A DNA stretch of 64,000 nt from contig NC_042999.1 in the NCBI RefSeq assembly GCF_006345805.1, forward strand, positions 6,200,001 to 6,264,000, written 5' to 3'. Both the position numbers and the translations under genes were made by a program. Within the stretch, counting starts at the first letter, position 1, and each line of letters starts with the position of its first letter. The notes under the pieces were generated by a model. The model searched no databases, was not told the origin of the DNA, and saw only the letters and a list, made by a program, of their open reading frames with translations. Positions 30,758 through 62,435 of this stretch are shown here, piece by piece. Source of the DNA: Octopus sinensis. Its lineage: Eukaryota.

Positions 30758-30830
30758 TCATGTTGTTGTCGCTGCTGCAGGAGTAGAAACTGTTCTCATT
30801 TTGTTGGTCCTTGAATTTAGGGATTTTTGC
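30758..30830 (-). CDS. UBTF: UBF-like terminal exon: (M)QKSLNSRTNKMRTVSTPAAATTT*
   Basis: attttcag acceptor, phase-2 compatible, TGA at 30760-30758, AATAAA 23 nt further on. Confidence 0.72.
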
Positions 30831-32023
30831 CTGAAAATGAAATATAACTAAATATACAAAGACATTCTATATTTTAATATTACATAAAGTGAAATTCGAT
30901 GACGGGCACGAGCACCATATGAGTGTGATCGTTGACAGAGTGGCTAACTGGCTTCCGTGCCAGTGGCACATAAAAGGCACCATTCGAGTGTGATCGTTAC
31001 CAGTGTCGCCTTACTGGCACCTGTGTCCCATGCTAGTAGGGTGCCAAGAGCACCATCCGAGAGTGATCGTTGCCAGAGCAGCCAACCGGCTTCCGTGCTG
31101 GTGGCACATAAAAGGTACCACTCGAGCGGGATCGTTACCAACGCCGCCTTACTGGCGCCTGTGCCGGTGGCATGTGTAAAAAGATTCGAGCGAGGTCATT
31201 GTCAGTACCGCCTGACTGGCCCCCATGCCGCAGGCATGTAAAAAGCACCCACTCCACTCTCAGAGTGGTTTGCGTTGGGAAGGGCATCCAGCTGTAGAAA
31301 CTCTGCCAGATCAAGACTGGAGCCTGGTGCAGCCATCTGGTTCGCCAGTCCTCAGTCAAACCGTCCAACCCATGCTAGCATGGAAAGAGGACATTAAATG
31401 ATGATGATGATGATATTTAAAAGGTTGCAAGCTGGCAGAATCATTAGCACAGGTAAAAATGCTCAGTGGCATCTTGTCTGCCTTTACATTCTGAGTTCAA
31501 AGGCTGCCGAGGGTGAATTTGCCTTTCATCGTTTCCAGAGTTGACTTTAAACCACCCCACGCCCGAAATTGCTGGCCTTGTGCCAAATATGAAATCAATG
31601 TCACCAATTGGTTTGAAATTGTAGCACAACACCAGCAATTTCAGGGCTAGGCTAAAGTGATTACATTGACCCCAAAGTACCCAGTACTCAACAGGTACTT
31701 ATTTTATTAACTTTAAAAGGCAAAGCCAACCACAGTAGAATTTGAACTTGGAACATAAAGATGGACAAAACGCTGCTAAGCAATTTGCCTGGTCTGCTCA
31801 CAGTTCTGCCAGTTCACCACTTTTTCTTCTTTAAACCCATTAAAAGCCAAAGTGGTTGGCATTATGAAGGGCATCCAGCTATAGAAACATTGCCAGATTG
31901 TATTGGAGCCTGGTGCAGCCTTCTGGCTCACCAGCCCCCAGTCAAACTGCCCAACCCATGCCTGCATGGAAAGTGGATGTTAAACGATGAGGATTAACAA
32001 TAACTATCAACTGTCTCGTTAAA

Positions 32024-33210
32024 TTAGGTTGTCAGGAAAGTTCTTGCGTAATTTTTAATTTTGATTTTAAATTATGTATTTTCAAATTGCTTTGACTTTA
32101 TATATCATTTTAAAGTCTGTTCTTTGCTCTATCTAATCGTGTTACTCTTTTTCTTTTTAAATAACGAGGCCATTTTGCAAATTTGCACAACTTTCTTATT
32201 CCATTTCAAGCTAAGCCGAAAAGGCTGCTGAAACAGCTCACAATACCAACAATGTATTTGACCCAGGAACCACAAATGAACCATTAGCAAAAATGGTGGT
32301 TCAAGAAATTTCGTACTGGTCGGCCATCGGATGTTGACAATGATCAACTAAGAGCCTTAGTCACAGCCAATCCAGGCACAACCGTTCAAGAGCTTGCTTC
32401 TGAATTAGACGTAACGTATATGACAATTTCCAACCGCTTGAAAGAGATAGCAAAAACATAAATACTTGAGAAATGGGTGCTGCACGAATTGAACAACAAC
32501 CAAAAGAAAAAAAAAACGCCGTTTTGAAGTGTCATCTTCTCTTCTTTTACACAACTGGATTGTGACTTGTGATGAAAAGTAGATTCTTTACGACAACCAG
32601 TGATGCTCAGCTCAGTGGTTGGATGCTGACAAAGCTCCACGGCACTTCCCGAAGCGAAATTTGCACTAAAAGAAGGTCATGGTGACTGTTTGGTGGTCTG
32701 CGGCTGGTCTCATCCATCACAGATTTTGGGATCCAAGCAAAACCATTACGGTGGAGAAGTACTGTCAGCAAATGGATGAAATGCATAAGAAACTCCAACA
32801 ACAGTCAGTATTGGTCAATAGAAAAGGACCAATTCTTCTCCATGAAAATGCTTGGCCACATGTCACACAACTGACCCTACAGAAGTTGAATGAATTGGGC
32901 TACGAAACTCTGCCTCATCTGCCATACTCACCAGACCTCTCGCCTACAGATTACCACTTTTTCAAGCATCTCGACAACTTCCTGTGTGAGAAATGTTTCA
33001 AAAACCAAGACAATGCCATACACGCCTTCAACGACTCCATCGCCACCAGAACGCAGGATTTTTACGCTACCGGCATAAATAAACTTGTTTTGCGTTGGCA
33101 AAAGTGTGTTGATTCTGATGGTGTTTACTTTGAATAATAAAGTTTTGTTTGAGTTGAGATATGTAAATCTGAATTTAAAGGTTAAAAGCCGCAAGCTCTT
33201 GACAACCTAA
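32024..33210 (+). mobile_element. Mariner transposon, Hsmar1-like (cecropia-type), defective
   Basis: TIRs TTAGGTTGTC.../...GACAACCTAA followed by TA. ORF 32679-33137 with YSPDLSPTDYHFFKHLDNFL. 5' part has stops and frameshifts; HDNARPH is altered to HENAWPH. Confidence 0.92.
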
Positions 33211-33468
33211 TAAAATATAAACCTGATTTAACAACCAAAGATTCTATTTTTATGGAATTTGTTCTTTGAAATTTAGGTGGGAAACTTCATTTGTAGCCCC
33301 CTTTCATATCCCCATCACATCTTAGATGCCACTAACGGAATTATCATCACTGAGATCTGGCCTTCCTTCCTGCTAGTCAAATATTGGGGCTCTGCCCAAG
33401 GACATGGCCACCACCACCTGTTTCTCAATAATCGATCAAACAATAGAATAAAAATGATTGTGAATTAC

Positions 33469-33612
33469 ATTGCTTTCCTCTGCTTTTTGTACGATTGCTG
33501 TGAAGCTTTCGGCAGCATTTTCCACCGTTCCTGAAGAGCTTTATATTTTTCAGCTTTGTCAAGACCAGGTAAAGAATCTTTATTTTCACTGTAGTATAAC
33601 AAAAACGCAGAT
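33469..33612 (-). CDS. UBTF: UBF-like HMG box C: SAFLLYYSENKDSLPGLDKAEKYKALQERWKMLPKASQQSYKKQRKA
   Basis: ctttccag acceptor, gtaatt donor, 144 nt, phase 2-2. Canonical SAF....W..L....Y HMG pattern. Confidence 0.9.
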
Positions 33613-33739
33613 CTGGAAAGAAAAAAAAAAATTACAGAAAGTAGTAAGAATAATGAAACTTAAGAAAAAATCTTCCACTCTAACAAAATATTCTGTCTCT
33701 ACAACAACCATGTTCACCATGTGGTAAATATAAAAGAAG

Positions 33740-34154: not shown

Positions 34155-34396
34155 GTAAATATAAAAGAAGTACTTGGAGAGTATCATAAGTTGAAACCAT
34201 TCCTATCCGAGAAGAGCCAAGAAAATAGCAATTTCAATATTCTCTCTTTTACTTGTTTCAGTCATTTGACTGCGGCCATGTTGGAGCACCGCCTTTAGTC
34301 AAGCAATTCGACCCCGGGACTTATTCTTTGTAAGCCCAGTACTTATTTTATTGGTCTCTTTTGCCGAACCGCTAAATGACGGGGACGTACACACAA

Positions 34397-34451
<55 letters not shown>

Positions 34452-34674
34452 CGACAGGCTTCTTTCAGTTTCCGTCTACCAAATCCACTCAGAAGGCATT
34501 GGTCGGCCCGGGGCTATAGCAAAAGACACTTGCCCAAGATGCCACGCAGTGGGACTGAACCCGGAACCATGTGGTTGGTTAGCAAGCTACTTACCACACA
34601 GCCACTCCTGCGCCTATCTACACACTTTCCTCAGAAATTTACAAAGTAGAGTCAATAAAGAAATAGCTACTTAC

Positions 34675-34692
34675 GCAGGTTGATTCTTTTTC
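34675..34692 (-). CDS. UBTF: UBF-like 18-nt micro-exon: KKNQP(A)
   Basis: ttttctag acceptor, gtaagt donor, phase 2-2. Supplies the Pro that precedes the SAF motif of HMG box C. Confidence 0.78.
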
Positions 34693-35344
34693 CTAGAAAA
34701 AAGAAAATATTTCCAATTAATATGGTGCCATAATAATGTTAACACATTTCAACAATGTAAGAAAGGTTACAAGCAACAATGTCTTGTCTGATTCTGGCAG
34801 AGGGAAACAAATTTTTACAGTTTTATTCCCAATATTAATTTCTTGTGGGTCCCTTGTTGATAAAAGTGAGGTAAATGAACAGTCAAGTTGTTAGGCTCAC
34901 AACTAAAACATTGTCAGCTCAATCCCTTCATTTCACATGGCCTCAGCCTTCTCGACTGTCACCTAAGTACCCGGGGTAGCTCTCTCTCTTTCTGCCCTTC
35001 CACCTGCAATGTCCTGCTGAGAGAATGTCCATGTATGTACAGGCACTTAAAATACCAAGCAAAATCATAATACAAAAACTGTCCAGCCATAGCCACCACC
35101 CCTACCCCATCACACTCTCTCATCCCATGACTCACTGTCTCCTTCCTCTCCTTCTACTCACTCTCCTTCTTGTAGCATCTCATTGTTTTGTATTAATCAT
35201 GCATAATCTTGTAGCCTTGAGTTTACAATGATGTGATTGTTTATTTTTAGAATGAAATTGTGGGTTAGGTGTGAGAGGCTAGATCTGGCCTGTTTGAACA
35301 TAAAACAGAATATTTTGACTGGAGTTTAAATACTAAAGGGTCAC

Positions 35345-36235: not shown

Positions 36236-36252
36236 TCTAATTTCAGTTGTTC
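36236..36252 (-). CDS. UBTF: UBF-like 17-nt micro-exon: EQLKL(E)
   Basis: Long pyrimidine tract + ccacag, gtaagt donor, phase 0-2. Confidence 0.78.
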
Positions 36253-37480: not shown

Positions 37481-38752
37481 TTAGGTCATCCCATATATAA
37501 TGCAGATTCTTTTATTTTTCAAAATTAAGATACACAAAGTTCTTTTCTCATCTAAAATATACTCCCCTTCATTTTTATACAATGCTCTTCCATCTATCTG
37601 GTAGACTTGCAAGGACCCTCTTCCAAAATTTCCTTCTCTGTGACGAAAATTATTCCTCCAGTACTGTACTGACCTCGTCAACAGAATTTATATTTTTTCC
37701 GTCCAAATGATTTTGAAGACTGCAGAATAAATGATAATCAGATGGGGCAATGTTCGGCGAATATGGTGGGTGGGGGTATTGTTTCCCACTCAAACTGCTC
37801 CAGCCTTTCGAATGTCATCCTCGCTGTATGTGGCTGGGCATTATCCTGATGGAAGAATACCTTTTGTCTTGAAAGCAAAGATGGTTGTTTTCCTTCTAGC
37901 ACTGACTTAAGCTGCTCACAGTAGATCTTCCTTGTTATCGTTTGGTTTGGGTTTAAAAGTTCAAAGTGGACTAAACCTTTCATGGTCCAACAAGCAGATA
38001 ACAACACCTTACGTGGGTGAAGACCTTCTTTAGCCTGGGGTGCCAGTGTTTCTCCTTTCCCTACTCACTATCTTCGGCGCTTGACATTTTTATAGAGAAC
38101 CCATTTCTCATCACCAGTCACTATTCGGTCCAAAAAAGGTTCATTCATGAGACGTGACAGCAAAGAAGAGCACACATTCACTCTCAGTGCATGATTAGGC
38201 TCAGAAAGTTTGTGAGGAACCCATTGACCCAATTTACTGACTTTTCCGATGGCAAGCAGGTGTCGATAAATGGTTGACTGACCAAATCCAAGCTTCTCAG
38301 TTAGATCTTCAAAAGTTACAATGGGATTTTGTTCCACCAGGGTTTGCAGGACATCCTCATCAAGCTCTACAGATCTTCCAGGATGAGGCCCATCTTCTAG
38401 GCTGTAGTTTCAGGCTCAGAATTTCTGGAACCACTGTTGGCACTGGCTTACACTTATTGTCCAATCCCCATATACTGCATTAATAATCTTTGCACTTTCC
38501 ATTGCATTGTTGCCTTTATTGAACTCATAAAGCAAAATATGCCAAATATGCTCCTTTGTCATTTCCATCATAGCTTTGGAAAAATAACTGTTAAAATTGA
38601 ACTGCACTCTTTAAAACTTGCACTAAGAATAAGTACAAGTTAAAACTACTACCTGCTTTTATAGCAAGTTGATGCAGGTAGTTTATCCCGTCCCCCTCCG
38701 ACTTTTAGTTCACGCAAGTGAAAAAAACCGCATTATTTACAGGATGACCCAA
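37481..38752 (-). mobile_element. Full-length (1272 bp) mariner transposon, frameshifted
   Basis: TIRs TTAGGTCATCC/TTGGGTCATCC with TA on both sides. Fragments WVPHKL, IVTGDEKW, HQDNAQPH, and C-terminal LPDRWKSIV...EGEYILD. Confidence 0.92.
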
Positions 38753-40046: not shown

Positions 40047-40188
40047 CATTTTACTTCTATTTTCATAATCTTCTTTCACAGCTGCTGGTAATTCATTGAA
40101 AATTTTACTAAGTCCTTTCATTCTGTTGGTGCCTTTCACATCAACAAGGAGATGGCTAGACATTTTGATAAACAATCCAAAACCATTA
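40047..40188 (-). CDS. UBTF: UBF-like HMG box B: (C)NGFGLFIKMSSHLLVDVKGTNRMKGLSKIFNELPAAVKEDYENRSKM
   Basis: ttttgcag acceptor, gtaaag donor, 142 nt, phase 2-0. Compare UBF box 3 NSYSLY...[21 protein letters not shown]. Confidence 0.9.
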
Positions 40189-41222: not shown

Positions 41223-41432
41223 TCTCTTTCTCTCTTTTACTTGTTTCAGTCATTTGACTGCGGCCATACTGGAGCACAGCCTTTAATTGAGCAACTCGAC
41301 CCCGGGACTTATTCTTTTGTAAGCCCAGTACTTATTCTATCGGTTCTTTTGCCGAACCGCTAAGTAACGGGGATATAAACACACCAGCATCGGTTGTCAA
41401 GCAATGCTAGGGGATCAAACACAGACACACAA

Positions 41433-41446
<14 letters not shown>

Positions 41447-41510
<64 letters not shown>
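41447..41510. repeat. (TA)n microsatellite inside SINE A; similar tracts at 34405-34445, 25285-25312, 15590-15645
   Basis: Direct inspection. Confidence 0.9.
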
Positions 41511-41515
<5 letters not shown>

Positions 41516-42519
41516 CATACATATATACGACGGGCTTCTTTCAGTTTCCGCCTACCAAATCCACTCACAAGGCTTTGGTTGGCCTGAGGCTATAGTAGAA
41601 GACACTTGCCCAAGATGTCACGCAGTGGGACTGAACCCGGAACCGTGTGGTTGGTAAGCAAGCTACTTACCACACAGCCACTCCTGCACCTGTGTGATTC
41701 TTTATTTTCAGAATGACATTGTAGAGTTGGTGTGAGGGACCTGATCTGACCAGTTTAAACATAAAACAGGTAGAATATTTTGGGCCAGACATGGTCAGTC
41801 TAAATAGCAAAGGGTCAAATGTAGATTACTATGACTGAAAGCTTTCGGTGCTCTGACCTTCCATGGCTCAACTGGTTCTGTATTTATAGAGCAAGAGTAA
41901 TTAGCTTTGTGAAGGAGTTTGGCTCAAGAATGCAAGGTCACAAGTTCAATACCTGGCATGCATTGTGTCCTTGAACAAGACACTTTATTACACAGTGCTC
42001 CAGTCTACCCAGCTGGCAAAAATGATAGCACCTGTTTTGAAGGGCCAACCATGTCATATTCTGAGTCACACTAAATCTCACTGTGAACCAATGTCTGTGG
42101 AGTACTCGGCCACTTGCACCTTTGATCAACTGGAACCCTCGTCATCATAACTAATGAAGTGCCAGATTTAGTTGGCCAGGGATGTATCCTGGTCACTAAT
42201 CAAGTCACTCTTCATCTTTCAGTTGCAGACAAATTCTCTTGTAATTTTCGGTACTCATTGCTAACATCTGGTTGTAAAATAAAAGGCTCTGTCCAGGGAT
42301 ACAAAATATTGCCAGTAGGTGATCCAAACTTATAAATTACAAAGTGCGAATATTTTATTCATGACAACTCATTTTCACAGATCATAAATGAAATCAGTTG
42401 ATTACTTCAAATTAAGATTGTTGCACATTGGACTTTTATGAAATTATTAGCAGGCGTGGTTGTGTGGTAAGAAGCTTGCTTCACAACCACATGGTTCTGG
42501 GTTCAGTCCCACAGCATGC

Positions 42520-43249: not shown

Positions 43250-43365
43250 CAGCAAGGCTTCTCAGGGAGACCGGTCCTTCTAAGAAGCATTTTCTGTTCA
43301 AGTTTTGTGAAAAAAGGTTTCGCTGTAAACTCTGGGTGCAATTTTTTGTATTCCTCGGCTTCGTC
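43250..43365 (-). CDS. UBTF: UBF-like linker exon: DEAEEYKKLHPEFTAKPFFTKLEQKMLLRRTGLPEKPC
   Basis: ttgttatag acceptor, gtaaaa donor, 116 nt, phase 0-2. Matches the UBF box2-box3 linker (KHPE...LTKAERQL...GRPTKP). Confidence 0.9.
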
Positions 43366-45554
43366 CTATAACAAAATAAAGTTTTAGATTTACATTTAGA
43401 ACCATGTTGCAGAACTTAAAATCCTTCTTTTGTCAATAAATTATAACTCATTCCTCATCAGCTCTGATTTTGTGCCACATGAAATGTGCCAGTGCTGTGT
43501 AAATGCACCAGTGCCAATGGCATGTGATAAGGACCCAGCACACTTTGTAAAGTGGTTGGCATTAGGAAGGACATCCAGAAGCATAAACAGACAACTGGAG
43601 TCTGGAGAACTCCTGTCAAACAGTCCAACCCATGCCAGCATAGAAAACGGATGTTACATGATGATGATGATGATGAAATTTATAAGCTCACATTGTTGAC
43701 ATGTATTTTCATTTGCTGGAGCTAGAGGAAGGACCACTGCAGGATGGTCTTAGAATGGTGAGTGTGGGGAAAGTCATAAGCATGGAGAAAATTTCAGAGG
43801 GAAACATTTTAGGAAGGAAGGATTGGACACAGTGATAAACATACAACCTGCAGAAGGAACAAGAATGATGAGAGGAAGAGAGAGAGAGAGACAACAGGAG
43901 GATGGGAATGTCTGAGTGGAGGTAACAGGAATCCATTTACCTCTGAGGAGTAGAGGCCATTATATTAGAGAGAGAGGGAGGACGGAGAGAGAGAGAGAGA
44001 GAGCAATGGGTCAGAAGCTAAAGTGTAACAGTGATTTCATGCCAATCTGTCTGGTGGCCATTTTATGAATGCATTCTAAGACATTTAAATAGAAAATAAT
44101 AGCAAATCAGAAACTGAAGAATAAATAACTTTTTACAAACATTATGGAATTTACCAGACCATGTACAAATAAATGACAATTGGTTGCATTGCAAATTTTA
44201 CAAACTCATACAACAGCACTGATCAGAACCTGTCCTCTTTCACACTGGAACCGTCTTTTATCAACCAAGACCTTGTGCTGTTCTTGAGAAGACGACCCAT
44301 CAAGCCAAGTCATGGCAGATGGTGGTGTCACGCAAACTGGCACCCAATACACTCTCAGGAGTGGTTAGGAAGGAAATCCAGCTGTAGAAACCATGCCAAA
44401 TTGGACTGGAGTCTGGTGCAGACCTTCAGCTTACCCTTTTACCCCTGCATAACCCTTAAAATAAATTACATGTCTAAAGGAACTCCTCTACAAAAAGAAC
44501 TATATACTATATATTTTTCATATGTTTTTCATCATAGGTCACAGGGTAAACATCATATATCTTAGGCCAACAGGTTTTGGGGTCAGATGATATACTCTCT
44601 CTCTATATATATATATATATATGAATCCTTTAAGGTTACCATCAACCCTTAATTCCATCTTTCCGCCATTGTTCTCACCATCTACACCGGATATGCCCTC
44701 CTCCTCCCCCACCACCATTACGTGTGTCTCTCCCTCCTACCCCTCCCCCTCACATGCTTTCACTGTGTACTACCCTTCCCCCCCACCAAGACAAGCTGCT
44801 AGCGCCGCAGCTCATCAACCGCCCCACTGATCTTACGTTACCTCCTGTTTTGAATCTGTCACTGCCTCAATCCGACTATCTCCTTCCAGTCCCCTCCCCG
44901 CCTCGTGATATCCTACGTTTTTATTTCTTATGAACCTGCACCAACCCTTCCCTGTCATCATTCCTCCTTACCCCAACCTTCCCCACTGGTGCTTCCCTAT
45001 GTTACCTGCACCACCCCCCACTATCTCTCCCTCTCTTTTCACTGGTGGAACCTTCCTCAGCTGGTCCCCCCCCCAACTCAACTCTAGTAAAGCTCGAACC
45101 GATCGTGACCGATGCCAGACCCCCCGGCCCCTGTGCAGGTGGCACGTAAAAAGCACCCACTCCACTCGCGGAGTGGTTGGCGTTAGGAAGGGCATCCAGC
45201 CGTAGAAACTCTGCCAGATCAGACTGGAGCCTGGAGCGGCCCCTGGCTTCCCAGACCCCGGTCAAACCGTCCAACCCGTGCTAGCGCGGAAAACGGACGT
45301 TAAACGATGATGATGATGATGATGATGGCTGCCCCCTTGTTATCGAGTATGGCCATTGCACGAAGCTTAACTGTTATTGGTGCTGTGATAGAATGTGACT
45401 TTTTAACCCAGTTAAAGATCTACAATGTCTTGTACAGAATTGGAAACTAAAACCTTTACCGGCAATAGCCGGCTGTAGTTGTAACTGGGCTTCATGTACC
45501 TTTGCTCCTGCCAAATTACACTCTCTTCCACATGCCTGACAGTGGTCAGGTTGT

Positions 45555-45845
45555 CACTCATCTGTCTCGCTTTATGACTACGAAGATGACTCTTGAGTCC
45601 AGCTTTACTGAGGCAGGGTCTTGCACAGACACTGCATGTCAGCATCATAGGAAGACCCTTCTCATCTGGAAGTATAACAGCGATGCCCTTCCTGACATCC
45701 CTCCTTACTTTCTCATGCGCAACTCGAGATTTCTCAAAAGTAGCTGTCCCCTCATGCACAATCCTTCTCCACCTGCTACACTCAATAGCTATGCCCTCTC
45801 ATGTGTCAGGAGAAATGCAAGCATCTCTTAAGGAAGCCTTCAGCA
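45555..45845 (-). mobile_element. RTE-1/BovB-like LINE 3' fragment with a C-terminal zinc finger
   Basis: WRRIVHEGTATFE...CSVCARPCLSKAGLKSHLRSH. Confidence 0.7.
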
Positions 45846-45857
45846 AGTCCTTATACC

Positions 45858-46771: not shown

Positions 46772-46882
46772 CAAGTACTTCTTTTCCCAATCTACTGCCT
46801 GCATAATATATTTCATCTTCTTTTTATCGTCCAAAGTCACCCACTGTTTTGTTATAAGGTTCAATATTTCGATTTGGCGAAG
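46772..46882 (-). CDS. UBTF: UBF-like HMG box A, second half: LRQIEILNLITKQWVTLDDKKKMKYIMQAVDWEKKYL
   Basis: ttttcag acceptor, gtaggt donor, 111 nt, phase 0-0. KQW..L..KKK.KY HMG helix 2-3 pattern. Confidence 0.92.
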
Positions 46883-48419
46883 CTGAAAAGGGGCAGAAAA
46901 AAGATTGCATTACATTTTCTTGTAAAAGAAAAAAAAAAGAGAAAATATTTTAACTGTGGTTAAATTTTCCTGCAAACGTCTCCACAAAATTTTGAAACAA
47001 AAACGTGGGTGAATACAGTAAAATCTGAATTTTAATATGACCATAGTTAAAATTATACAATCACACCAACTTTTTCCTGTTGGCATTGGCAAGAAAGTCA
47101 GAAAATGTAACTGTAATGACAGATTTGTGGATCTTTGTGATTATCAAAACCTCCGTCGTCATCGTTTTAACGGCCGCTTTCCATGCTAGAATGGGTTGGA
47201 CAGTTCAACTGGGGTCTGGGAAACCAGGAGGCTGCACCAGGCCCAGTCTGATCTGGCAGTGTTTCTACAACTGGATGCCCTTCCTAACGCCAACCACTCC
47301 GTGAGTGTAGTGGGTGCTTTTTACGTGCCAGGTGAGGCTGGCAACAGCCACGATCGGTTGGTGCTTTTTACGTGCCACTGGCATGGAGGCCAGTCAAGGC
47401 GGCGCTGGCAATGGTCATGTTCGGATGGTTCTTTTACATGCCACTGGCACTGGTATCACAACTACAATTTCCATTGATTTTTGATCGATTTCGATTTCAC
47501 TTGCCTCAACAGGTCTTCGCAAGCAGAGTTTAGTGTCCAATGAAGGAAAGGTATGCATAAGTGAACTGGCTACATCCCAGGTAAAGGCCACAGGTTATGG
47601 TCTCACTTGTCCTGCCGGGTCTTCTCACGCACAGCATACTTCCAAAGGTCTCGGTCACTAGTCATTGCCTCGGAAATGACAGGCATGACAAACTTATAGA
47701 ACAGAAATTACATCAGTCCCAGTTGGCTGTCCATTGTAGGTCAATGTTGACTGTTCTGTCCAGAACGAAATGCCTTAGACCAGTAAAGGCAGTTGGCATT
47801 GTCCTTCCACCAGAATGCCTCTCTGGGTCTCCCTGCCAAGTACCAAGTGGTGTACCAGAGAGCAATGGACACAGTCAATATCAAAGAAGCACTGCATAAG
47901 CAGCTCACTTGCTAGTCAACACACAATCATTGTCTGGTGGTATAGATCTTCCACTTGGCCACATTAACCTTCAACCTTGCTGGTTATCCAACATCCTGCT
48001 GTCAGAGTGTTCACCATATCCCTGGCAGAAGAGGATAAGTGGTTGCTAGCACTTGCCTAAAGTGCCACCCCAGTGTACAGATGGAAAGGGCAACTTACTC
48101 TGCCTTTTATGGCCTGTGCCACTGACATGGATGCTGCACAGTATGGAATTAGTTCTTGTAATGCAATGATGATAAAGGCTGGGGAAGGTGTCTGCTGAAA
48201 ATGTGAGGTGAAAGTTCCAGAATTTATTTGAGCAATAAACTCAAATGCGCAGGAGTGGCTGTGTGGTAAGTAGCTTGCTAACCAACCAAATGGTTCCGGG
48301 TTCAGTCCCACTGCGTGGTATCTTGGGCAAGTGTCTTCTGCTATAGCCCTGGGCCGACCAATGCCTTGAGTGGATTTGGTAGACGGAAACTGAAAGAAAC
48401 CTGTCGTATATATGTATAT

Positions 48420-49854
48420 CATCATCATCATCATCATCATTTAGCATCCGTTTTCTATGCTAGCATGGGTTGGACGGTTCTACTGGGGTCTGTGAAGCCA
48501 GAAGGCTTCATCAGGCCCAGTCAAATCTGGCAGTGTTTCTACGGCTGGATGCCCTTCCTAACGCCAACCACTCCGAGAGTGTAGTGGGTGCTTTTTACGT
48601 GCCACCCGCACAGGTGCCAGACAGAGCTGGCAAACGGCCACGAACGGATGGTGCTTTTTTATGTGCCACCAGCACGAGGGCCAGGCGAGGTTGGCAACGG
48701 ACACGAAACGGGGCGGTGCTGGCAACGGTCGCGAAACGGAAGGTTCTCTTACATGCCACCGGCACTGGTAACACATCTGCAATTTCCATTGATCGATTTC
48801 GATTCTGATCCTCACTTGCCTCAACAGGTCTTCACAAGTAGAGTCTTGTGTCCCAAGAAGGGAAGGTATGCATACGTAGGCTGGCTCCATCCCATGTAGA
48901 AGGCCACGGGTTATGGACTCACTTGTCCTGCCGGGTCTTCTCGCGCACAGCACACTTCCAGAGGACTCGGTCTCTAGTCATTTCCTCAGTGAGACCTAAA
49001 GTTCGAAGGCCGTGCTTCACCAACTCGTCCCAGGTTTTCCTGGGTCTGCCTCTTCCACAGGTTCCCTCAACCGCTAGGGTGTGGCACTTTTTCACACAAC
49101 TATCTTCATCCATTCTCGCCACATGACCATACCAGCGCAAACGTCTCTCTTGCACACCACAACTGATGCTTCTTAGGTCCAGCTTTTCTCTCAAGGTACT
49201 TACACTCTGCCGAGTGTGAGTACCGGCATTACGCATCCATCGGAGCATACTGGCTTCATTTCTTGCGAGCTTACGCATATTCTCAGCAGTCACGGCCCAT
49301 GTTTCACTGCCATGTAGCATGGCTGTTCGTACACACGCATCATACAGTCTGCCTTTCACTCTGTGCGAGAGGCCTTTTGTCACCAGCAGAGGTAAGAGCT
49401 CTCTGAACTTTGCCCAAGCTATTCTTACTCTAGCAGTTACACTTTCAGCACACCCGCCCCCGCTGCTGACTTGGTCACCTAGGTAACGGAAACTATCAAC
49501 TATTTCTAGTTTTTCTCCCTGGAAAGTGACGGAAGTTGGTCTCAGAGCATTTTCAGTGTTTATTGTTCCTGAGTATCTGCCACATACAAAAACCATCTTC
49601 CTAGTTAGCCTTCCTTTGACATTGCTGCACCTCTTATGTGTCCATAGCTTACACTTGGTGCATCTTATAGAGTTTCTACCTACACCTTTTCTACAGATCG
49701 AGCAGGGCCATCTACCTGAAGGCGTTTGTGATTTGTCTACCTTCCTACTGATTATGACTTTGGTTTTAGCTAGATTGACTTTGAGGCCCTTTGATTCTAA
49801 TCCTTGTTTCCACACCTGAAACTTCTCCTCCAGTTCTGATAGCGACTCAGCATC
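48420..49854 (-). mobile_element. 5'-truncated RTE-clade LINE with open ORF2 3' part, 3'UTR repeats and (GAT)n tail
   Basis: Open frame 49850-48919 with GLKVNLAKT, C-x2-C knuckle, FRYLG, LHGSETW, RRLRWYGHV, RGRPRKTW. 10-bp TSD ATATGTATAT at 48410-48419 and 49855-49864. Confidence 0.93.
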
Positions 49855-50110
49855 ATATGTATATATATATATATGTGTATGTGTGTGTGTTTGTCCCCCT
49901 AGCATTGCTTGACAATGCTGGTGTGTTTACGTCCCCGTCACTTAGTGGTTCGGCAAAAGAGACTGATAGAATAAGTACTGGGCTTACAAAGAATAAGTCC
50001 TGGGGTCGATTTGGTCGACTAAAGGTGGTGCTCCAGCATGGCCGCAGTCAAATGACTGAAACAAGTAAAAGATTAAAGAGTAAGAGTAAATGAAAAAAAA
50101 AAAAACTTAC

Positions 50111-50198
50111 ATGTGGAAATTTCTTGAATGCTTTTTTATAATGCGAATCTATGTACAATTTTAATGGAGTCATCGGTTTTGGCTTCGTTATTGCTTTG
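50111..50198 (-). CDS. UBTF: UBF-like HMG box A, first half: KAITKPKPMTPLKLYIDSHYKKAFKKFPH
   Basis: ataacag acceptor, gtaagt donor, 88 nt, phase 2-0. P-K-P-x-T-P HMG-box start. Confidence 0.88.
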
Positions 50199-51074
50199 CT
50201 GTTATGGAAAAAGAAATAATCTTGATTAGCAAAAATTGGAAAAAAAAAAAATAAATAAAAGGGGGGGACATACAAAACCCAGTAGATGTAGGGGTTGTGA
50301 CATTCAAGCCTTTCTCAACAATAGTGTAGTAGAAATGAAATGAGTAAATAAATTTTTGAATCCAGAACAAAGAACTTGGTTCATCTGCCACTTGGCACTG
50401 CTCCAGCTAGAAAACTACTGCCACTTTAGTCACAATTTAGGTTCCTAACACTAGCTTTTAATGATATATAAGGTACTTTACTAAATTCCTTCTTATATTT
50501 AAAGTAATTGAAAGAAACAGAGAGCATCTTAAATAAATACAGTAACGAAAGGGTTAACATCCATTTTCCATGCTGGTATGGGTTGGATGGTTTGACTGTG
50601 GTCTGGAGAGCCAGCGGCTGAACAAGGCTCCAGTCTGATCTAGCAATGTTCCTACAGCTGGATGCCCTTCCTAACACCAACTACTCTGACAGTGTAGGGT
50701 ACTTTTTATGTGTCACTGGCACAGGGGCCAGTAAGGTAGACTTGGCATCAAACACATTCAGATGATGCTTTTTACGTGCCATCAGTACGGGAGCCAGTCA
50801 GGAGGCACCAGTTTCACTTGACTCAACAGGTCTTTCTTTATAGAATAGAAAAATAGTCAAGATAAGTGTATCGGTCATCCTTATTTATCAGCTACAGACA
50901 CACCTCTCACATGTTTAGCTGTCAGTTGTGAATATGACCTGGTAGTGGGTCTCCTCTGGTTTTGGTGCTTTAGGTGGCCTAGATACCCTGCTGCCCTTCA
51001 AGTTCCTCTGCAGGCATATGATTTTTGCTCATGGATGCTGGTGCCACATAAAAAAACCACCCGTACCAGTGCCC

Positions 51075-51602
51075 TCATCATCGTTTAACATCCGTTTTCC
51101 ATGCTAGCATGGGTTGGACGGTTCAACTGGGGTCTGGGAAGCCAGGAGGCTGCATCAGGCTCCAGTGTGACCTGGCAGTGTTTCTACAGCTGGATGCCCT
51201 TCCTAACGCCAACCACTCCGTGAGTGTAGTGGGTGCTTTTTACATGCCAGTCGAGGCTGGCAACGGCCACCGGCACGGAGGCCAGTCAAAGCGGCACTGG
51301 CAATGGCCATGTTCGGATGGTGCTTTTTATGTGCCACCGGCACTGGTATCACAACTACAATTTCTATTGATTTTGATTTCACTTGCCTTAACAGGTCTTC
51401 GCAAGCAGAGTTTTGTGTCCCAAGAAGGAAAGGTATGTATAAGTGAACTGGATACATCCCAGGTAAAGGCTACAGGTTATGGTCTCACTTGTCCTGCCGG
51501 GTCTTCTCATGCACAGCATATTTCCAAAGGTTTCGGTCGCTAGTCATTGCCTCGGTGAGACCTAATGTTCGAAGGTCGTGCTTCACCACCTCGTCCCAGG
51601 TT
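51075..51602 (-). mobile_element. RTE LINE 3' end (a close relative lies at 47155-47665, minus)
   Basis: TWDEVVKHDLRTLGLTEAM ORF2 end, hairpin-repeat UTR, (GAT)n tail. Confidence 0.85.
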
Positions 51603-51669
51603 GTAAATACATATGTACCAGTACCACATAAACACACCTGCACTGGTGCAGTGTAAATGTTACCTGTAT

Positions 51670-52468
51670 CAGGTAACATGTGGTGTGCAAGAGAGACGTC
51701 TACGCTGGTATGGACATGTGGTAAGAATGAAGATAGTTGTGTAAAAAAGTGCCACACCCTAGCGGTTGAGGGAACCTGTGGAAGTGGTAGACCCAGGAAA
51801 ACCTGGGATGAGGTGGTGAAGCACGACCTTCGCTCTTTAGGTCCCACCGAGAAAATGACTATAGACCGAGACCTTTGGAAGTATGCTGTGCGTGAGAAGA
51901 CCCGGCAGGACAAGTGAGGCCATTACCCGTGGCCCCTACCTGGGACGTAGTCAGTCCACCTGTGCATACCTTCCTTCTTGAGACACATAACTCTACTTGT
52001 GAAGACCTGTTGAGGCAAGTGAAAATCAAAGAATCAAAAATCAAATCAAAATCGAAATCGATCAACATCATTGGAATTTGTAGTTTGTGGTACCAGTGCC
52101 GGTGAAAACCATCAGAATGTGGCGGTAGCCAGCACCGTATCGACTGGCCTCCGTGCTGGTGGTACATAACACCATCCGATCGTGGCCGTGCCAGCCTCGC
52201 CTGGCCTCCGTGCTGGTGGCATGTAAAAAGTACCATCCGAGCGTGGACGTTTGCCAGCCTCGTCTGGCATCTGTGTCGGTGGCACATAAAAAAGCACCCA
52301 CTACACTCTCGGAGTGGTTGGCGTTAGGAAGGGCATCCAGCTGTAGAAACACTGCCAGATCAGACTGGAGCCCGGTTCAGCCTCCTGTCTTCCCAGACCC
52401 CAGTCAAACCATCCAACCCATGCTAACAGGGAAAGCAGACGTTAAACGATGATGATGATGATGATGAT
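51670..52468 (+). mobile_element. RTE LINE 3' end
   Basis: EDSCVKKCHTLAVEGTCGSGRPRKTWDEVVKHDL...EKTRQDK*, UTR, (GAT)n tail. Confidence 0.88.
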
Positions 52469-53791: not shown

Positions 53792-53811
53792 GTTTTGGAA
53801 GTGTTTAATGT
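53792..53811 (-). CDS. UBTF: UBF-like 20-nt micro-exon: TLNTSK(T)
   Basis: Long pyrimidine tract + ttttcag, gtatgt donor. Phase 0-2 is exactly what is needed to join the flanking exons. Confidence 0.8.
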
Positions 53812-53901: not shown

Positions 53902-53936
<35 letters not shown>

Positions 53937-55707: not shown

Positions 55708-55764
55708 CGGTAATATCCTGATAGCATCTTTTACGATTTCCAACATTGTCCGAATCTTGCGAAC
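55708..55764 (-). CDS. UBTF: UBF-like exon: VRKIRTMLEIVKDAIRILP
   Basis: ttttaaag acceptor, gtaaat donor, 57 nt, phase 0-0. Compare human VRKFRTLTELILDAQ. Confidence 0.9.
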
Positions 55765-56806: not shown

Positions 56807-56979
56807 TTTTGCTACAGCCGCTGTATACATAGCCTTACAGTCTTCAGGTGTGTAGGAATCAAACTGGACCCGTTCCCAAAGTTCTTCAGTTTTTATCTTT
56901 GTAGTGTCTGATAAATTGTTTTGAAGAGAAACTAAAAGTCTTAATACGTCTTCCTTTGGCCACGTCTGTTCTCGGTTTC
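56807..56979 (-). CDS. UBTF: UBF-like N-terminal dimerisation-domain exon: (R)NREQTWPKEDVLRLLVSLQNNLSDTTKIKTEELWERVQFDSYTPEDCKAMYTAAVAK
   Basis: cttgcag acceptor, gtaagt donor, 173 nt, phase 1-0. Aligns by eye with human UBF WSQEDMLTLLECMKNNL...WEKVAFKDFSGDMCK. Confidence 0.9.
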
Positions 56980-57445: not shown

Positions 57446-59595
57446 CAAAAATACTGTCCTTTCTTGAATATTTAAATGGCCACGATCACATAAAAGCACC
57501 AACTGATCGTGGCCGTTTGCAAGCCTCATGTGGGCCCCATGCTGGTGGCACGTAAAAAGCACCCACTACACTCACGGAGCGGAAGGGCATCCAGCTGTAG
57601 AAACACTGCCAGATCAGACTGGAGCCTGGTGCAGCCTCCTGGATTCCCAGACCCCGGTCGAACCGTCCAACCCGAGCTAGCATGGAAAACGGACGTTAAA
57701 CGATGATGATGATGGAGCTAAACTAAAAGATACTCACTTGATATCAAAAACTTTGACTTTTCATTTTCTTCTTTTTCTTTCTTTTGACCTTAAAATAAAA
57801 AAGAAATATATATATATATGAATATGTTATTGTTACTAGTTGAGGAACTAAAGTTTAATTACTAAATATAGCCACACCATGGCTGCGTGGCAAAACGTTT
57901 GTTTCTCAACAACATGGTTCCAGGTTCGGTCCTACTGCATGGCACCTTGGGCAAGTGTCTTCTAATGATAGACTGGAGCCAGTTAGTGTTATGATTAGAT
58001 CTGATAGATGGAAACTGAAAGAAGCCTGTTGTGTGTGCGTGTATATTTGTCCTCTCACAATGGCTGTCAAACAGTGTCGGTTTGTTTATGTCCTTGTAAC
58101 TTAGTGGTTGGGCAAAAGAGAATGATTGAAGAAGTACCAGGCTTAGAAAAAAGTACTGGGTACAATTTATTTCATTCAACCCTTTCAAGGTAGTGCTCCA
58201 GCATGGCCGCTGTCCAATGACGGAACCATGGCCTTCATGATGGGATGCATTTTGGGGGGGCCATGGGTTTTTGTCTTTTTAAACTCAAAATGGGACAGAG
58301 AGCAAAAAAGACCATGTAGATTAAACAAAATTTCTACTGACTAATGATTAAAATGACAAAAAAAAAAAAAAGACTACAAAATGGATTAACCATTAATATT
58401 TAAACTAGTCAAAATGGATTACTTCCTAAAGAACACAGAGTCGCTTTCCCAGTTTCTCTGGGATGCCGGTCCTTCACAAGACCACCCGTTTTGCCAGCTG
58501 AGTGAACTGGACAAACATGAAATGAAGTGTTTAGCTAAAGAACACAACGCATTGCCCAGTCCAGGAATTGAAACCTCAATTTTACAATCATGAGCTCAAC
58601 ATCCAAACCATTAATCCACGTGCCAAAATATCTTACCTCTTTTATGTACCAATTTGGCCAGAATTGACCTCTCAGATAACCCTAACCCTAGAATGTCATT
58701 CTAAATATAAGCCAGTGGTTCCTAACCAGTTAACTATCAAGGTGTTGGGAAGGGCATCCAGCTGTAAAAAGCTTTTCTACTCTAGGCACAATGCCCAAAA
58801 TTTGGGGGCAGGAAGCTAGTCGATTTGATTGACCCCAAAAGGATAAAAGACAAAGTTGACCATGGCAGAATTTGAACTCAGAATGTAAAGAGACAAAATA
58901 CTGCTAAGCATTTCGCCTGGTGTACTAACGTTTCTGCCAGCTCACCGCCTTATCTTTGTATAATAACAGCTGAGATAGATGTTGGAGAATTGATTGGTAC
59001 AGGCTTCTGCCTGGCTGGCTCCTGTCAAACGGTCCCACCCATGCCAGTATGGAAGAGAGACATTAAATGATTATGATGATGAATGGTTATGAAAATGCAG
59101 GTGAAATGGAACCACCACCACTGACATAAACTCTACCTAATACAACAACTTCAACTATAAATAGTCCAAGTCCTATAATTTTTCTCTAAAAACAGTTATT
59201 CAGCAAAATCATCATCATCATTTAACGTCCGTTTTCCATGCTGGCATGGGTTGGACGGTTCGACCGGAATCTGGGAAGCCAGGAGGCTGCACCGGGCTCC
59301 AATCTTGATTTGGCAGTGTTTCTACAGCTGGATGCCCTTCCAAACGCCAACCACTCCGTGAGTGTAGTGGGTGTTTTTTACGTGCCAGGCGGGGCTGGCA
59401 AACGGCCACACATAATTGGCTGGTGCTTTTACGTGTCACCAACACGGACGCCAGTCAGGCGGCGCTGGCAACTGCCACGTTCGGACGGTGCTTTTAACGC
59501 GTCACCGGCACGGGGAGGGTATCTTAACTGCAATTTCCATTTGATTTTCATAAATGAAAACATTTAATCTCATTCTAATGTAAAAATCAACTCAC

Positions 59596-59799
59596 GTTCT
59601 TTCATTTTATTGTTCCCTTTGCTAGCATCGTCACTACTAACTGCGTAGTCACCATCACCAACGTCCATACTTCTTTCCAATTTCACATCAGCATCATTTT
59701 GCAATATTTCCTCTGCCTCCTCCTCCTCCACCTCCTCTTCATCCTTTTTGTGTTTTTTATGTTTCTTTTTCTTTTTCTTCACTGCCACCTCTCCATCAA
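59596..59799 (-). CDS. UBTF: UBF-like exon: (V)DGEVAVKKKKKKHKKHKKDEEEVEEEEAEE...NNKMKE
   Basis: tttgcag acceptor, gtgagt donor, 204 nt, phase 1-1. Basic cluster followed by acidic tract. Confidence 0.8.
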
Positions 59800-60361
59800 C
59801 TGCAAACAACAAAGCAATCAGATTTTACAGACAAAAAAGCTAATTCTATTCTGTAGCGAAATTCTAATGACCCTTGGTTCTAACGATGGTCCTATGGCTA
59901 CAATAAGTGCCTATTACAAGTTATAATTTTATTTGATTTTCATTTTGATGAATGAGTATTTATTAATCTAATCTTAATTCACTTTAATACTTCTACTAAT
60001 TTAGTAATTCAAGTAGTATTATCTGTAATGTAAGTACGACATTCTGGCCTTCCCTACTGAAGGTTGAGGGCAGTAATTCTTCAAGTGAGATGCTTCTCAA
60101 TTGAGCCAAATATTTAATATATTTCCAATGCTGGTGCCACATAAAAAGCATCAGTACACTTTGAGTAGTTGGCATGAGGAAGGGCATCCAGCCATAGAAA
60201 CCATGCCAGAAGAAACAATGGAGCCTGGTGTGCTCCCCCAGCCTTGCCAACCACCATCAAATCATCCATGCCAGCATAGAAAATGGACATATGATGATGA
60301 AGATATTGATGCCTGAGAAAAGTGGGATCTTTTCGATTTGGCTGCTAATTTCAATTTCATA

Positions 60362-60685
60362 TTCAGTTTAATGATACATTTTTATAGGGTAATCAATGCT
60401 ATGAAAATCATTTTCATTATAAATCAATAAATAAATAGTTATTAGCTAATAAAGTTTGAAAATTTTGGGTTCAGTGTAATGATACATTTTTATAGGGTAA
60501 TCAATGCCATGAAAATCATTTTCATTATAAATCAATAAATAAATAGTTATTAGCTAATAAAGTTTGAAAATTTTGGATTCAGTGTAATGATACATTTTTA
60601 TAAGGTAATCAATGCCATGAAAATCATTTTCATTATAAATCAATAAATAAACAGTTATTAGCTAATAAAGTTTGAAAATTTTGGG
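60362..60685. repeat. AT-rich tandem repeat, 3 x 108 bp
   Basis: Units start at 60362, 60470 and 60578 and differ by only a few substitutions. Confidence 0.92.
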
Positions 60686-61891
60686 TAATTTTAGCCAATC
60701 ATAAGCCACAGACGCATTCATGCCTGTTTCCATAGTAACCGGCAGAACATGAGAACTCTTTTGTCTGCGAGAAAGCACTCATTGACAGATATATTGAAAC
60801 CACTTGTTGACACTGTATTCTACTGTTTTACCCACCTGGAAATTTCACCATCCTGTTTGATTATAGCAGCAAGCTCTAGTAATCTCGCATCTATAATGGA
60901 GACACTGAGAGCAGAAGATCAAGGCATATTGAATGCTTAAAACTACAAAAGACGTGTTGTTTACTCATTTTCCACATGTACAATATAAATACTGACAACA
61001 TGTGCCATTTACAGGATGTTGACAAAATGTGCTGTCACACAAAATGACAGCTTCCAAATCCTGTTTCCTAACTGGGTGAAAATGATCAAACTTTAAACCT
61101 CTATAACTTTTTTTTACAAATTTTTCTGGAAAAAGTGAAATAAATCCAGCAATTCACCTTGGAAAACTACATTAATGTACCAAATTTTGAAATTTTCGAT
61201 ACATTTTAATTGCTGAAACCTTTGCAGCCAAATGGAAAAAATCCGAAACATATAATGTTATTAAAGAGATATTTTGTTGTGTCTAGAGAGAATCATTCTA
61301 GAAAAGAGAATGACTCTCCCCAGACACAACAAAACATGTGGTAAGTAGCTTGCTTACGAACCACATGGTTCCAGGTTCAGTCCCACTAGATGGCACCTTG
61401 GGCAAGTGTCTTCAACTATAGCCTCAGGCCAACCAACACCTTGTGAGTGGATTTGGTAGACGGAACGTGAAAGAAGCCTGTCGTATATATGTATGTGTGT
61501 GTATATTTTCGTGTGCTTTTTTGCGACCTTCCCCACCAACATCGCGTGACAACCGATGTTAGTGTGTTTATGTCCCCGTCACTTAGCGGTTCAGCAAAAG
61601 AGACCGATAGAATAAGTACTGGGCTTACAAAGAGTGAGCCCTGGGGTCGATTTGCTCGACTGAAGGGGGTGCTCCAGCATGGCCACAGTCACATGACTGA
61701 AACAAGTAAAAGAGTAGAAGAGAGAGCAGTACTTAACTGGTACTTGTTTTATTGACCCTGAAAGCCACCCACAGCAGAACTTGAACTCAGAATGTAGAGA
61801 TAGACAAAATACTAAGCATCCCCCACCACTAATACTGAAGCTTTAAAAATCTGAGGGAAAAACTGAGTATAATTACAACAACTATAATTAT

Positions 61892-62290
61892 AGGCGCAGG
61901 AGTGGCTGTGTGGTAAGTAGCTTGCTAACCAACCACATGGTTCCAGGTTCAGTCCCACTGCGTGGCATCTTGGGCAAGTGTCTTCTGCTATAGCCCCGGG
62001 CCGACCAATGCCTTGTGAGTGGATTTGGTAGACGGAAACTGAAAGAAGCCTGTCGTATATATGTATATATATATACATATATGTGTGTGTGTGTGTTTGT
62101 GTTTGTCCCCCTAGCATTGCTTGACAACCGATGCTGGTGTGTTTATGTCCCCGTCACTTAGCGGTTTGGCAAAAGAGACCGATAGAATAAGTACTGGGCT
62201 TACAAAGAATAAGTCCCGGGGTCGATTTGCTCGACTAAAGGCGGTGCTCCAGCATGGCCGCAGTCAAATGACTGAAACAAGTAAAAGAGT
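61892..62290 (+). mobile_element. tRNA-derived SINE family A (CORE-like body, central (TA)n/(CA)n), representative copy
   Basis: A box GGCTGTGTGGTAAG, B box GGTTCAGTCC, tail AAACAAGTAAAAGAGT. Other copies at 11400-11720(+), 15384-15811(-), 17488-17892(-), 25130-25450(-), 26595-27060(-), 27132-27522(+), 29834-30223(-), 34241-34615(-), 41224-41690(-), 42450-43200(+), 48244-50090(+, split by RTE), 57875-58230(+), 61335-61720(+). Confidence 0.88.
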
Positions 62291-62324
62291 AACTAAATCT
62301 GTAGAAAAACAAGCAAAAACTCAC

Positions 62325-62435
62325 CCTCGTCAACGTCATTGTCTTTGTTAACGACGTCTCCGGTGTTACTTTCTTCGTTTTCCTCTGCGATTGATCCATG
62401 TTTTTTACTCCTTCTTCTTTTCTTTTTCTTTGAAA
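62325..62435 (-). CDS. UBTF: UBF-like gene, first exon in window (5'-partial): SKKKKRRRSKKHGSIAEENEESNTGDVVNKDNDVDE
   Basis: ttctttcag acceptor, gtgagt donor, 111 nt, phase 1-1. In frame with the 59799 exon. Linked to the gene by phase and composition only. Confidence 0.7.

Follow-up and report, generated by a model that had tools for sequence, protein, structure and literature searches.

A three-box, tail-less UBF gene in Octopus sinensis, probably derived by loss of HMG boxes 1 and 4 and of the acidic tail

Described UBFs and the octopus gene

UBF, the architectural HMG-box factor of RNA polymerase I (Pol I), which bends the DNA of ribosomal RNA genes, is present throughout metazoans except Drosophila and C. 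elegans (PMC4973289), and the layout of the vertebrate protein, with an N-terminal dimerisation domain (NTD), box 1 as the first of its HMG boxes and an acidic tail at the end, is the reference for Pol I enhancesomes and active nucleolar organiser regions (PMC4973289, PMC10435976, PMC3905846). In vertebrate UBF, the dimerisation domain and the first boxes suffice for binding and bending of ribosomal DNA (rDNA). A dimer with three boxes per monomer forms the 360-degree loop of the enhancesome (PMC10435976). Loss of box 2 inactivates UBF2 in a yeast assay (PMC3905846), and the acidic tail is thought to act via an interaction with the initiation factor SL1 (PMC3905846, PMC1635259). The gene described here lies on the minus strand of a 64,000-nt stretch of the Octopus sinensis genome (assembly GCF_006345805.1, contig NC_042999.1, positions 6,200,001 to 6,264,000; hereafter the window). 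We consider it, with a probability of roughly 85%, to be the coleoid cephalopod orthologue of UBF/UBTF, with the layout NTD-b2-b3-b6 (b, box) derived by loss of boxes 1 and 4 and of the acidic tail.

Vertebrate UBF/UBTF, the best non-cephalopod match in reciprocal searches, is homologous to the octopus protein in its NTD, box 2, the linker between boxes 2 and 3 (TKAEQ..GxPxKPP), box 3 with an LSPEE-type motif after it, and terminal box. The octopus protein nevertheless harbours three boxes as opposed to five or six, being devoid of boxes 1, 4 and 5, and it also lacks the acidic, Ser-rich C-terminal tail. Conversely, the N-terminal extension is ~230-270 residues long in cephalopods but only ~15 in vertebrates. 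Box 1 is the most canonical box in vertebrates. Yeast Hmo1, a functional analogue of the N-terminal part of UBF, similarly combines a dimerisation module followed by HMG-box DNA binding with lysine-rich regions (PMC3905846), but it has a single canonical box.

We established an architecture table covering 177 relatives, in which 1-2-3, 1-2-3-6, 1-2-3-4-6 and 1-2-3-4-5-6 are the common box patterns. Tails shorter than 40 residues were found in 42 of these proteins, some of which are probably partial models, and N-terminal extensions of at least 40 residues in 87. In the three lophotrochozoan UBF loci that were mapped, those of Lingula anatina, Ridgeia piscesae and Haliotis asinina, the exon skeleton is the same as in the octopus gene around the NTD, box 2, the linker, box 3 and box 6, and canonical lophotrochozoan UBFs also have a basic/acidic N-terminal extension on phase-1 exons. 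However, the proteins of Lingula, Ridgeia, Capitella teleta, Lineus, Tubulanus and Haliotis read NTD-b1-b2-b3-b4-b6, unlike that of octopus. With the exception of Haliotis, the canonical lophotrochozoan genes carry an acidic/Ser tail on two further exons, whereas the octopus frame stops soon after the last box.

The UBFs of heterobranch gastropods (Aplysia californica, Biomphalaria, Elysia and Plakobranchus), which are sister to the cephalopod proteins in our tree, also have three boxes. They have retained boxes 2 and 3 and, in the place of box 1, a divergent first box, but no terminal box, in contrast with the NTD-b2-b3-b6 layout of octopus. Since different boxes are kept in the two groups, the reductions to three boxes are independent. 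The charged repeats are also placed differently, with alternating KKKK and SDSDEE blocks in the C-terminal part in Aplysia and charged repeats in the N-terminal part in octopus. Among individual relatives, the Aplysia protein (P0078) reads NTD-b1-b2-b3 followed by a C-terminal KKKK/SDSDEE repeat tail, a fish UBTF-like paralogue (Anableps P0023) reads NTD-b1-b3-b6, without box 2, and a Daphnia pulex protein (P0082) reads NTD-b2-b3-b6, without box 1; the latter is an old automatic gene model and should be taken with caution.

Gene model, identity of the boxes and exon skeleton

The exon model was built from a listing of stop-free stretches by splice-site scoring, using homologous proteins as guides. 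Between positions 62435 and 30758 of the minus strand, it comprises 15 exons with AG/GT borders throughout that form a single frame of 471 codons, ending with a TGA stop codon (30760-30758) followed 23 nt downstream by an AATAAA signal. The protein consists, in this order, of two K/R blocks each with an acidic block, the peptide of a 51-nt exon, the UBF NTD, three HMG boxes (A, B and C) and a 24-residue Ser/Thr/Ala tail, which reads MQKSLNSRTNKMRTVSTPAAATTT when counted from the split Met codon. The features are as follows.

62325..62435, minus strand: first coding exon in the window, internal, phase 1-1, with a K/R block then an acidic block; 100% identical to residues 145-169 of O. vulgaris P0003 and aligned to the O. 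bimaculoides cDNA contig (L003)
59596..59799, minus strand: exon of the N-terminal extension, KKKKKKHKKHKK then an acidic and Ser/Asp patch; aligns to the same cDNA
57738..57788, minus strand: in-frame 51-nt exon (QKKEKEENEKSKFLIS), phase 1-1; peptide identical in P0003, splice sites, cDNA alignment
56807..56979, minus strand: NTD (dimerisation domain), part 1; tblastn against vertebrate UBTF, E 5e-07; phase-0 intron at the same position in Lingula, Ridgeia and Haliotis
55708..55764, minus strand: NTD, part 2 (VRKIRTMLEIVKDAIRILP); splice sites, homologues, phase comparison
53792..53811, minus strand: 20-nt microexon (TLNTSK+AC), phase 0 in and 2 out, in the slot of the two canonical box-1 exons
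50111..50198, minus strand: box A (box 2), first part; phase-0 intron after ..FPH at the box-2 position
46772..46882, minus strand: box A (box 2), second part, 37 codons; the homologous exon has 37 codons in Lingula and 37-38 in Ridgeia and Haliotis
43250..43365, minus strand: end of box A and box2-box3 linker (HPEF..TKLEQKM..GLPEKP); linker profile, phase-2 intron as in canonical genes
40047..40188, minus strand: box B (box 3), first part; class profile scores
38920..39012, minus strand: end of box B (box 3) and LSPEE motif; homologues, splice sites, exon mapping
36236..36252, minus strand: 17-nt microexon (EQLKL+GA), phase 0 in and 2 out, in the slot of the two canonical box-4 exons
34675..34692, minus strand: 18-nt microexon (KKNQP), phase 2-2, counterpart of the '..GEPKKPP' exon before the last box
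33469..33612, minus strand: box C (terminal box, b6/b3 type); class profiles, phase-2 intron directly before SAF/SGY
30758..30830, minus strand: last coding exon, with the short Ser/Thr/Ala tail and the TGA stop codon; aligns to the 3' end of the O. bimaculoides cDNA
30730..30735, minus strand: AATAAA polyadenylation signal; in the cDNA contig, the same hexamer is followed by 2 nt only

On its 5' side, the model is incomplete. Position 62435 corresponds to a splice acceptor (directly after ttctttcag) in mid-codon, with no start codon, and O. vulgaris P0003, O. bimaculoides P0001 and exons 1-4 of Argonauta provide ~110-145 further residues upstream, coded in Argonauta by four more exons over about 20 kb. 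The start of the gene is therefore outside the window, with ~4 further coding exons beyond base 64000, and the locus represents the 3' three-quarters of the gene.

The Pfam HMG_box profile recognised three stretches in the window protein (E 7.4e-10), and an iterated hidden Markov model (HMM) of the boxes gave 48.8, 39.6 and 33.6 bits for boxes A, B and C, respectively. The NTD, at residues 123-199 of the window model, scored 68.9 bits with an HMM iterated over the 177 family members; no Pfam model recognises it, and PF14887 (HMG_box_5) has no match in the window protein. Beyond the HMM envelope of the last box, the 13-residue tail has no Asp or Glu in its best 30-residue window, compared with 21-24 in vertebrates.

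We next assigned the boxes using class HMMs generated from 81 canonical UBFs, in which the first three boxes form stable classes (b1, b2 and b3). In four-fold cross-validation, b1 and b2 were separated correctly in all 162 tests. Box A scored 55.6 bits as b2 and 38.0 as b1; box B scored 42.6 bits as b3, 38.4 as b6, 24.0 as b1 and 10.4 as b2; and box C scored 33.7 bits as b6, 29.3 as b3 and 22.5 as b4. When box A was divided at its exon border and scored with half-box HMMs, each half was b2-like in the three octopod sequences, the window values being 19.2 bits for b2 versus -1.7 for b1 in the N-terminal half and 42.8 versus 21.9 in the C-terminal half. A chimaera made of the N-terminal half of box 1 and the C-terminal half of box 2 was thereby rejected for octopods. 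The linker between boxes A and B reached 44.1 bits with the HMM of the b2-b3 linker and 9.5 with that of the b1-b2 linker, the ranges being 39-44 bits and 2-9.5 bits or less. Judging from these sequence comparisons, boxes A, B and C correspond to box 2, box 3 and the terminal box (6), respectively. Box 4, hinted at for box C by collinear profile alignments, was ruled out by the class scores and by the phase-2 intron, which immediately precedes SAF/SGY as it does in box 6 but not in box 4.

Exons were also mapped on the genomic loci of the Haliotis, Argonauta, Lingula and Ridgeia UBF genes, and their intron phases were resolved. Lingula, Ridgeia and Haliotis have a common skeleton of 18 exons, organised as follows.

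N-terminal extension: two exons, phase 1
NTD: two exons, phases 0 and 0
Box 1: two exons, entered at phase 0 and left at phase 2
Linker and box 2: three exons, phases 0, 0 and 2
Box 3: two exons, phases 0 and 0
Box 4: two exons, entered at phase 0 and left at phase 2
'..GEPKKPP' exon: one exon, phase 2 to 2
Box 6: one exon, entered at phase 2
Tail: remaining exons, the last two acidic/Ser in Lingula and Ridgeia

The octopus and Argonauta genes match the junctions and phases of this skeleton for the NTD, box 2, the linker, box 3, the exon preceding box 6 and box 6 itself. Octopus, Lingula, Ridgeia and Haliotis have in common the junctions NTD1/NTD2 (phase 0), b2a/b2b (0), b2/linker (0), linker/b3 (2), b3a/b3b (0) and pre-b6/b6 (2). 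In place of the exon pairs coding for boxes 1 and 4, both cephalopods have microexons of 20 and 17 nt, respectively, with identical phases (0 in, 2 out). Box A is interrupted by introns at both box-2 positions but not at that of box 1, and HMM scans and exon mapping revealed neither a counterpart of the two box-1 exons nor a relic of them in the intron. The intron junctions and phases and the microexon slots therefore indicate the architecture NTD-b2-b3-b6.

Boxes 1 and 2 coexist in the UBFs of Haliotis, annelids (Ridgeia and Capitella), Lingula, nemerteans, mites and deuterostomes. Their joint presence in brachiopod, annelid, nemertean and Haliotis proteins implies that the duplication predates cephalopods, which makes the cephalopod state a secondary one, with loss of box 1 as well as of box 4 and the tail. 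The ancestor would have been a lophotrochozoan gene of 18 coding exons, with the layout NTD-b1-b2-b3-b4-b6 and an acidic tail. The box-1 and box-4 exon pairs and the tail exons would have been lost, the two pairs persisting as phase-keeping microexons, and the N-terminal extension would have expanded from two to about seven phase-1 cassette exons.

Transcripts support the short layout. The O. bimaculoides cDNA contig (L003; 1893 nt, run SRR32601320) codes for isoform X4 as one uninterrupted open reading frame (ORF) and ends 2 nt past AATAAA. It aligns to 12 exons of the window with 77-92% identity, the gaps between the aligned blocks corresponding to the three microexons, and thereby validates the splicing as well as the short 3' end. 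The RefSeq isoforms X1-X7 of O. bimaculoides (480-621 residues) have the same NTD, three boxes and short C-terminus and differ only in their N-terminal cassettes; the Argonauta model has the same C-terminal architecture, and so do decapodiform cDNA contigs (P0024/P0172, 79% identical to an Acanthosepion pharaonis protein) in their layout. In six-frame scans of the 3351 stop-free fragments of the window with the box-class HMMs, there were no HMG boxes beyond the four exons of the model, all other matches having E > 0.2. Similarly, neither tblastn with vertebrate UBFs nor six-frame HMM scans over the 64 kb gave any match with E under 0.2 outside the model that could represent a box-1 relic, an extra box or an acidic tail. 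Downstream on the minus strand, no acidic ORF is present, and over the whole window this strand has no acid-dense open stretch other than exon 59596-59799. The deposited O. vulgaris protein P0003 (343 residues) ends with 'IISFSITAKQ', an intron-side reading from an alternative acceptor at 50220 (50191-50220, minus strand); this public model contains a splicing error and breaks off immediately ahead of box A.

For orthology, we performed a profile search among 1.84e9 representative proteins, with substrings of the O. bimaculoides and Argonauta proteins as queries, which returned 445 matches at E<=1e-3. Its named top matches are the UBFs of Ridgeia, Haliotis, Branchiostoma, Saccoglossus, Acanthaster, Tetranychus, Blomia, Lingula, Capitella, Lineus, Tubulanus, Aplysia, Biomphalaria and others. 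BLASTP against shark UBF gave E 1e-29, with an alignment that covers the NTD, and the matches of Haliotis UBF in a word-indexed search were limited to Haliotis proteins and one weevil protein. In a tree built on the NTD and the box2-box3 region, the cephalopod proteins group together (SH-aLRT, i.e., approximate likelihood ratio test, support of 97) within a mollusc clade that includes Haliotis and heterobranch gastropods (94 and 91), which is the position expected of an orthologue. An EF-1beta gene, convergent and about 8 kb downstream, bounds the 3' side of the locus (exons 19762-19899 and 22753-22881, plus strand; Pfam EF1_GNE, E 8e-12 and 3e-11). Argonauta hians has the same EF-1beta neighbour in the same orientation, and so synteny is conserved. 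The gene is already modelled in RefSeq for O. bimaculoides, with one isoform named "nucleolar transcription factor 1", and for Argonauta, such that both the orthology and the three-box, tail-less layout are present in these models; in our literature searches, we came across no publication on the architecture of UBF in cephalopods or other molluscs.

These data agree in large part with an initial annotation of this DNA, which had described a UBF with three boxes, no acidic C-terminal tail and a charged N-terminal extension. The charged blocks, the NTD, boxes A, B and C and the 24-residue tail that it listed are all present at the minus-strand positions that it gave, and both the gene model and the HMMs bear out the overall description, and no exon for a missing box or an acidic tail was found in the window or the cDNA. 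Its identification of the gene as UBF is upheld by the reciprocal searches, whose best non-cephalopod matches are UBTF of vertebrates and, in invertebrates, proteins named 'nucleolar transcription factor 1' or unnamed orthologues. The resemblance that it noticed between the end of box A with the following linker and the box2-box3 region was recovered by BLAST and the linker HMM. The charged extension does exist, but position 62435 is not the N-terminus of the protein, and the window only includes part of a longer extension.

Alternative readings and surroundings of the gene

A number of points weigh against the interpretation of the gene as an NTD-b2-b3-b6 orthologue. The margin of b2 over b1 for box A amounts to +17.6 bits in the window as against +8.5 in O. 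bimaculoides and +4.7 in the decapodiform sequence, whereas typical boxes 2 have larger margins (median +46, minimum +12.4), and the N-terminal half of the decapodiform box A is marginally b1-like (15.8 versus 12.2). It is because of this small margin and of the ambiguous decapodiform half that gene structure was also used. In BLAST, the collinear register (A=1, B=2, C=3) slightly outscores the shifted one overall, because its alignment includes the NTD, and box C is divergent, so that sequence alone cannot separate b6 from b3. Nucleolar localisation, rDNA binding and dimerisation are all attributed to the protein by orthology. Comparison of the whole coding sequence between the window and the O. 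bimaculoides contig gave ratios of nonsynonymous to synonymous substitution rates (dN/dS) of 0.58 overall, 0.27 for the NTD and ~0.5 for the core, with dS at 0.24; such a core value indicates constraint that would be purifying but weak, and the protein evolves fast for a core transcription factor. Lastly, a second, canonical UBF gene might exist elsewhere in cephalopod genomes, which we regard as unlikely (see below).

According to the initial annotation, box A stands for boxes 1 and 2 together, as an ancestral box preceding their duplication or as a fusion of the two. Such an origin would be in line with the position of box A directly after the NTD, like box 1, with its KKKMKYI motif, as in vertebrate box 1, with its lower than usual b2-over-b1 margin and with the marginally b1-like half of the decapodiform box. 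Nevertheless, the octopod box A scores as b2 in both halves, KKKMKYI is found in box 2 of Ridgeia as well, and the introns of box A occupy both box-2 positions and not that of box 1, whose slot is filled by a separate microexon. As boxes 1 and 2 coexist in all the groups mentioned above, from Haliotis to deuterostomes, the duplication is older, and we do not retain this proposal, which appears very unlikely. Even less probable is a collinear correspondence, in which box A would be box 1, box 2 would have been lost and boxes B and C would be the second and third boxes. The BLASTP alignment to shark UBF (109 bits) and the adjacency of box A and the NTD speak for it, but the A-B linker scores 44 bits as b2-b3 versus 9.5, and box B scores 42.6 bits as b3 and a mere 10.4 as b2. 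In addition, the phase-2 intron before box B, at KP(P)/xNG[FY], is the box-3 junction, and in the profile search it was with their box2-box3 region that most invertebrate UBFs matched A-B.

Two other explanations bear on the gene as a whole. It might be a reduced paralogue akin to vertebrate UBTF-like genes, with a canonical UBF harbouring box 1 and an acidic tail elsewhere in cephalopod genomes. Fish do have three-box UBTF-like paralogues, such as that of Anableps, and a dN/dS of ~0.5 would fit a less constrained copy. However, there is no second cephalopod UBF among the ~35 named proteins of the top 150 profile matches, the cephalopod proteins fall in our tree at the position predicted for the orthologue by the species tree, the EF-1beta synteny is common to Octopus and Argonauta, and the RefSeq name is that of nucleolar transcription factor 1; we thus deem a paralogue improbable. 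The short architecture could also be an artefact, caused by exons missed in gene modelling or by misassembly of the window. The three microexons of 17-20 nt show that exons are easily missed here, and the O. vulgaris model is an example of mis-splicing and truncation. This possibility is nonetheless extremely remote, given that independent O. bimaculoides and decapodiform cDNA contigs have the same layout in one ORF, that no HMG-box fragment (on both strands) or acidic fragment (on the minus strand) was found outside the model in the 64 kb, and that AATAAA follows the stop codon. Our preferred reading is therefore that of a coleoid UBF orthologue having lost boxes 1 and 4 and the tail.

The window also contains a number of repeats and other ORFs. 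Mariner-type transposase remnants are found in the UBF introns at 32679-33137 (plus strand) and 37741-38409 (minus strand; Pfam Transposase_1, E 3e-13 each). An ORF of 335 residues at 48922-49926 (minus strand) has a weak PHD/C1-like finger, with related copies near 51488-51922 (minus), 47606-47707 (minus) and 18382-18588 (plus). Its C-terminal motif, '..RPRKTWDE.VKHDLRTLGLTE.MT.DR.LWK.AV.EKTRQDK', recurs in the window and in the flank of the Argonauta gene, and this ORF family is probably a retroelement family. A high-copy short repeat translating as '..YQIHSQGIGRPGAIAEDTCPRCHAVGLNPEPCGWLASYLPHSHS', usually beside a (TA/TATA)n tract read as 'YIYIYI', occurs in both orientations, for instance at 29998-30234, 34351-34683, 41394-41657, 48057-48440 and 61812-62127; copies also occur in the Argonauta locus, and the repeat appears to be SINE-like (short interspersed nuclear element). 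Finally, an ORF of 128 residues in a UBF intron (45415-45798, minus strand), with a weak C2H2 zinc-finger match (E 0.002), may be repeat-derived.

N-terminal extension, predicted structure and significance

The introns of the N-terminal extension, analysed in the window (62435-57738, minus strand) and in the Argonauta locus (L002, 10001-32797), are all in phase 1 except for the first one of Argonauta, and most extension exons code for a lysine block followed by an acidic block. Cephalopods have ~7 such phase-1 exons compared with two in Lingula, Ridgeia and Haliotis, which suggests that tandem exon duplication might have generated the cassettes. The extension reaches 228 residues up to the NTD in O. 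bimaculoides isoform X3, with up to 15-17 Asp or Glu per 30 residues. Basic/acidic N-terminal extensions are common in invertebrate UBFs that keep acidic tails, and what is specific to coleoids is the combination of the absence of box 1, box 4 and the tail with a long extension of about seven phase-1 cassettes.

An AlphaFold2 model of the O. bimaculoides core, with a mean pLDDT confidence score of 76.7, has a four-helix NTD and three three-helix boxes. Foldseek searches matched it to tandem HMG-box proteins (HMGB1, TFAM and Abf2) and to boxes 3, 4 and 6 of mouse UBF, and a sequence search of the PDB gave generic HMG-box matches only.

We propose that the octopus protein would dimerise through its four-helix NTD and that each monomer would bend rDNA with its three HMG boxes, in a manner resembling the enhancesome core of vertebrate UBF made of the NTD and boxes 1-3. 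As the protein keeps the dimerisation domain and three boxes including box 2, such an enhancesome-like role is plausible by analogy. The lysine blocks would serve for nuclear or nucleolar targeting, and the N-terminal acidic and Ser-Asp blocks would be the only candidate substitute for the missing acidic tail, a shift of acidic function that the initial annotation had also suggested. In vertebrates, box 1 and the acidic tail are regarded as central to DNA binding and to SL1 contact. It is conceivable, although rather doubtful, that coleoid Pol I uses a UBF without box 1 or acidic tail in which the role of the tail has moved to the alternatively spliced N-terminal cassettes, which would make activation tunable by splicing.

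This is a moderate result of comparative genomics on a gene already modelled in RefSeq rather than a new system. Across the 177 relatives, the layout of UBF is plastic, with NTD-b2-b3-b6 in cephalopods, NTD-b1-b2-b3 in heterobranchs and no box 1 in the Daphnia pulex model, and the invariant core consists of the NTD, box 2, the linker and box 3, with box 1 outside this core. The exon pairs turned into phase-preserving microexons represent a clear case of domain loss inside a conserved gene skeleton. These proteins are natural deletion mutants for asking which of the boxes rDNA looping requires and through which region UBF contacts SL1.

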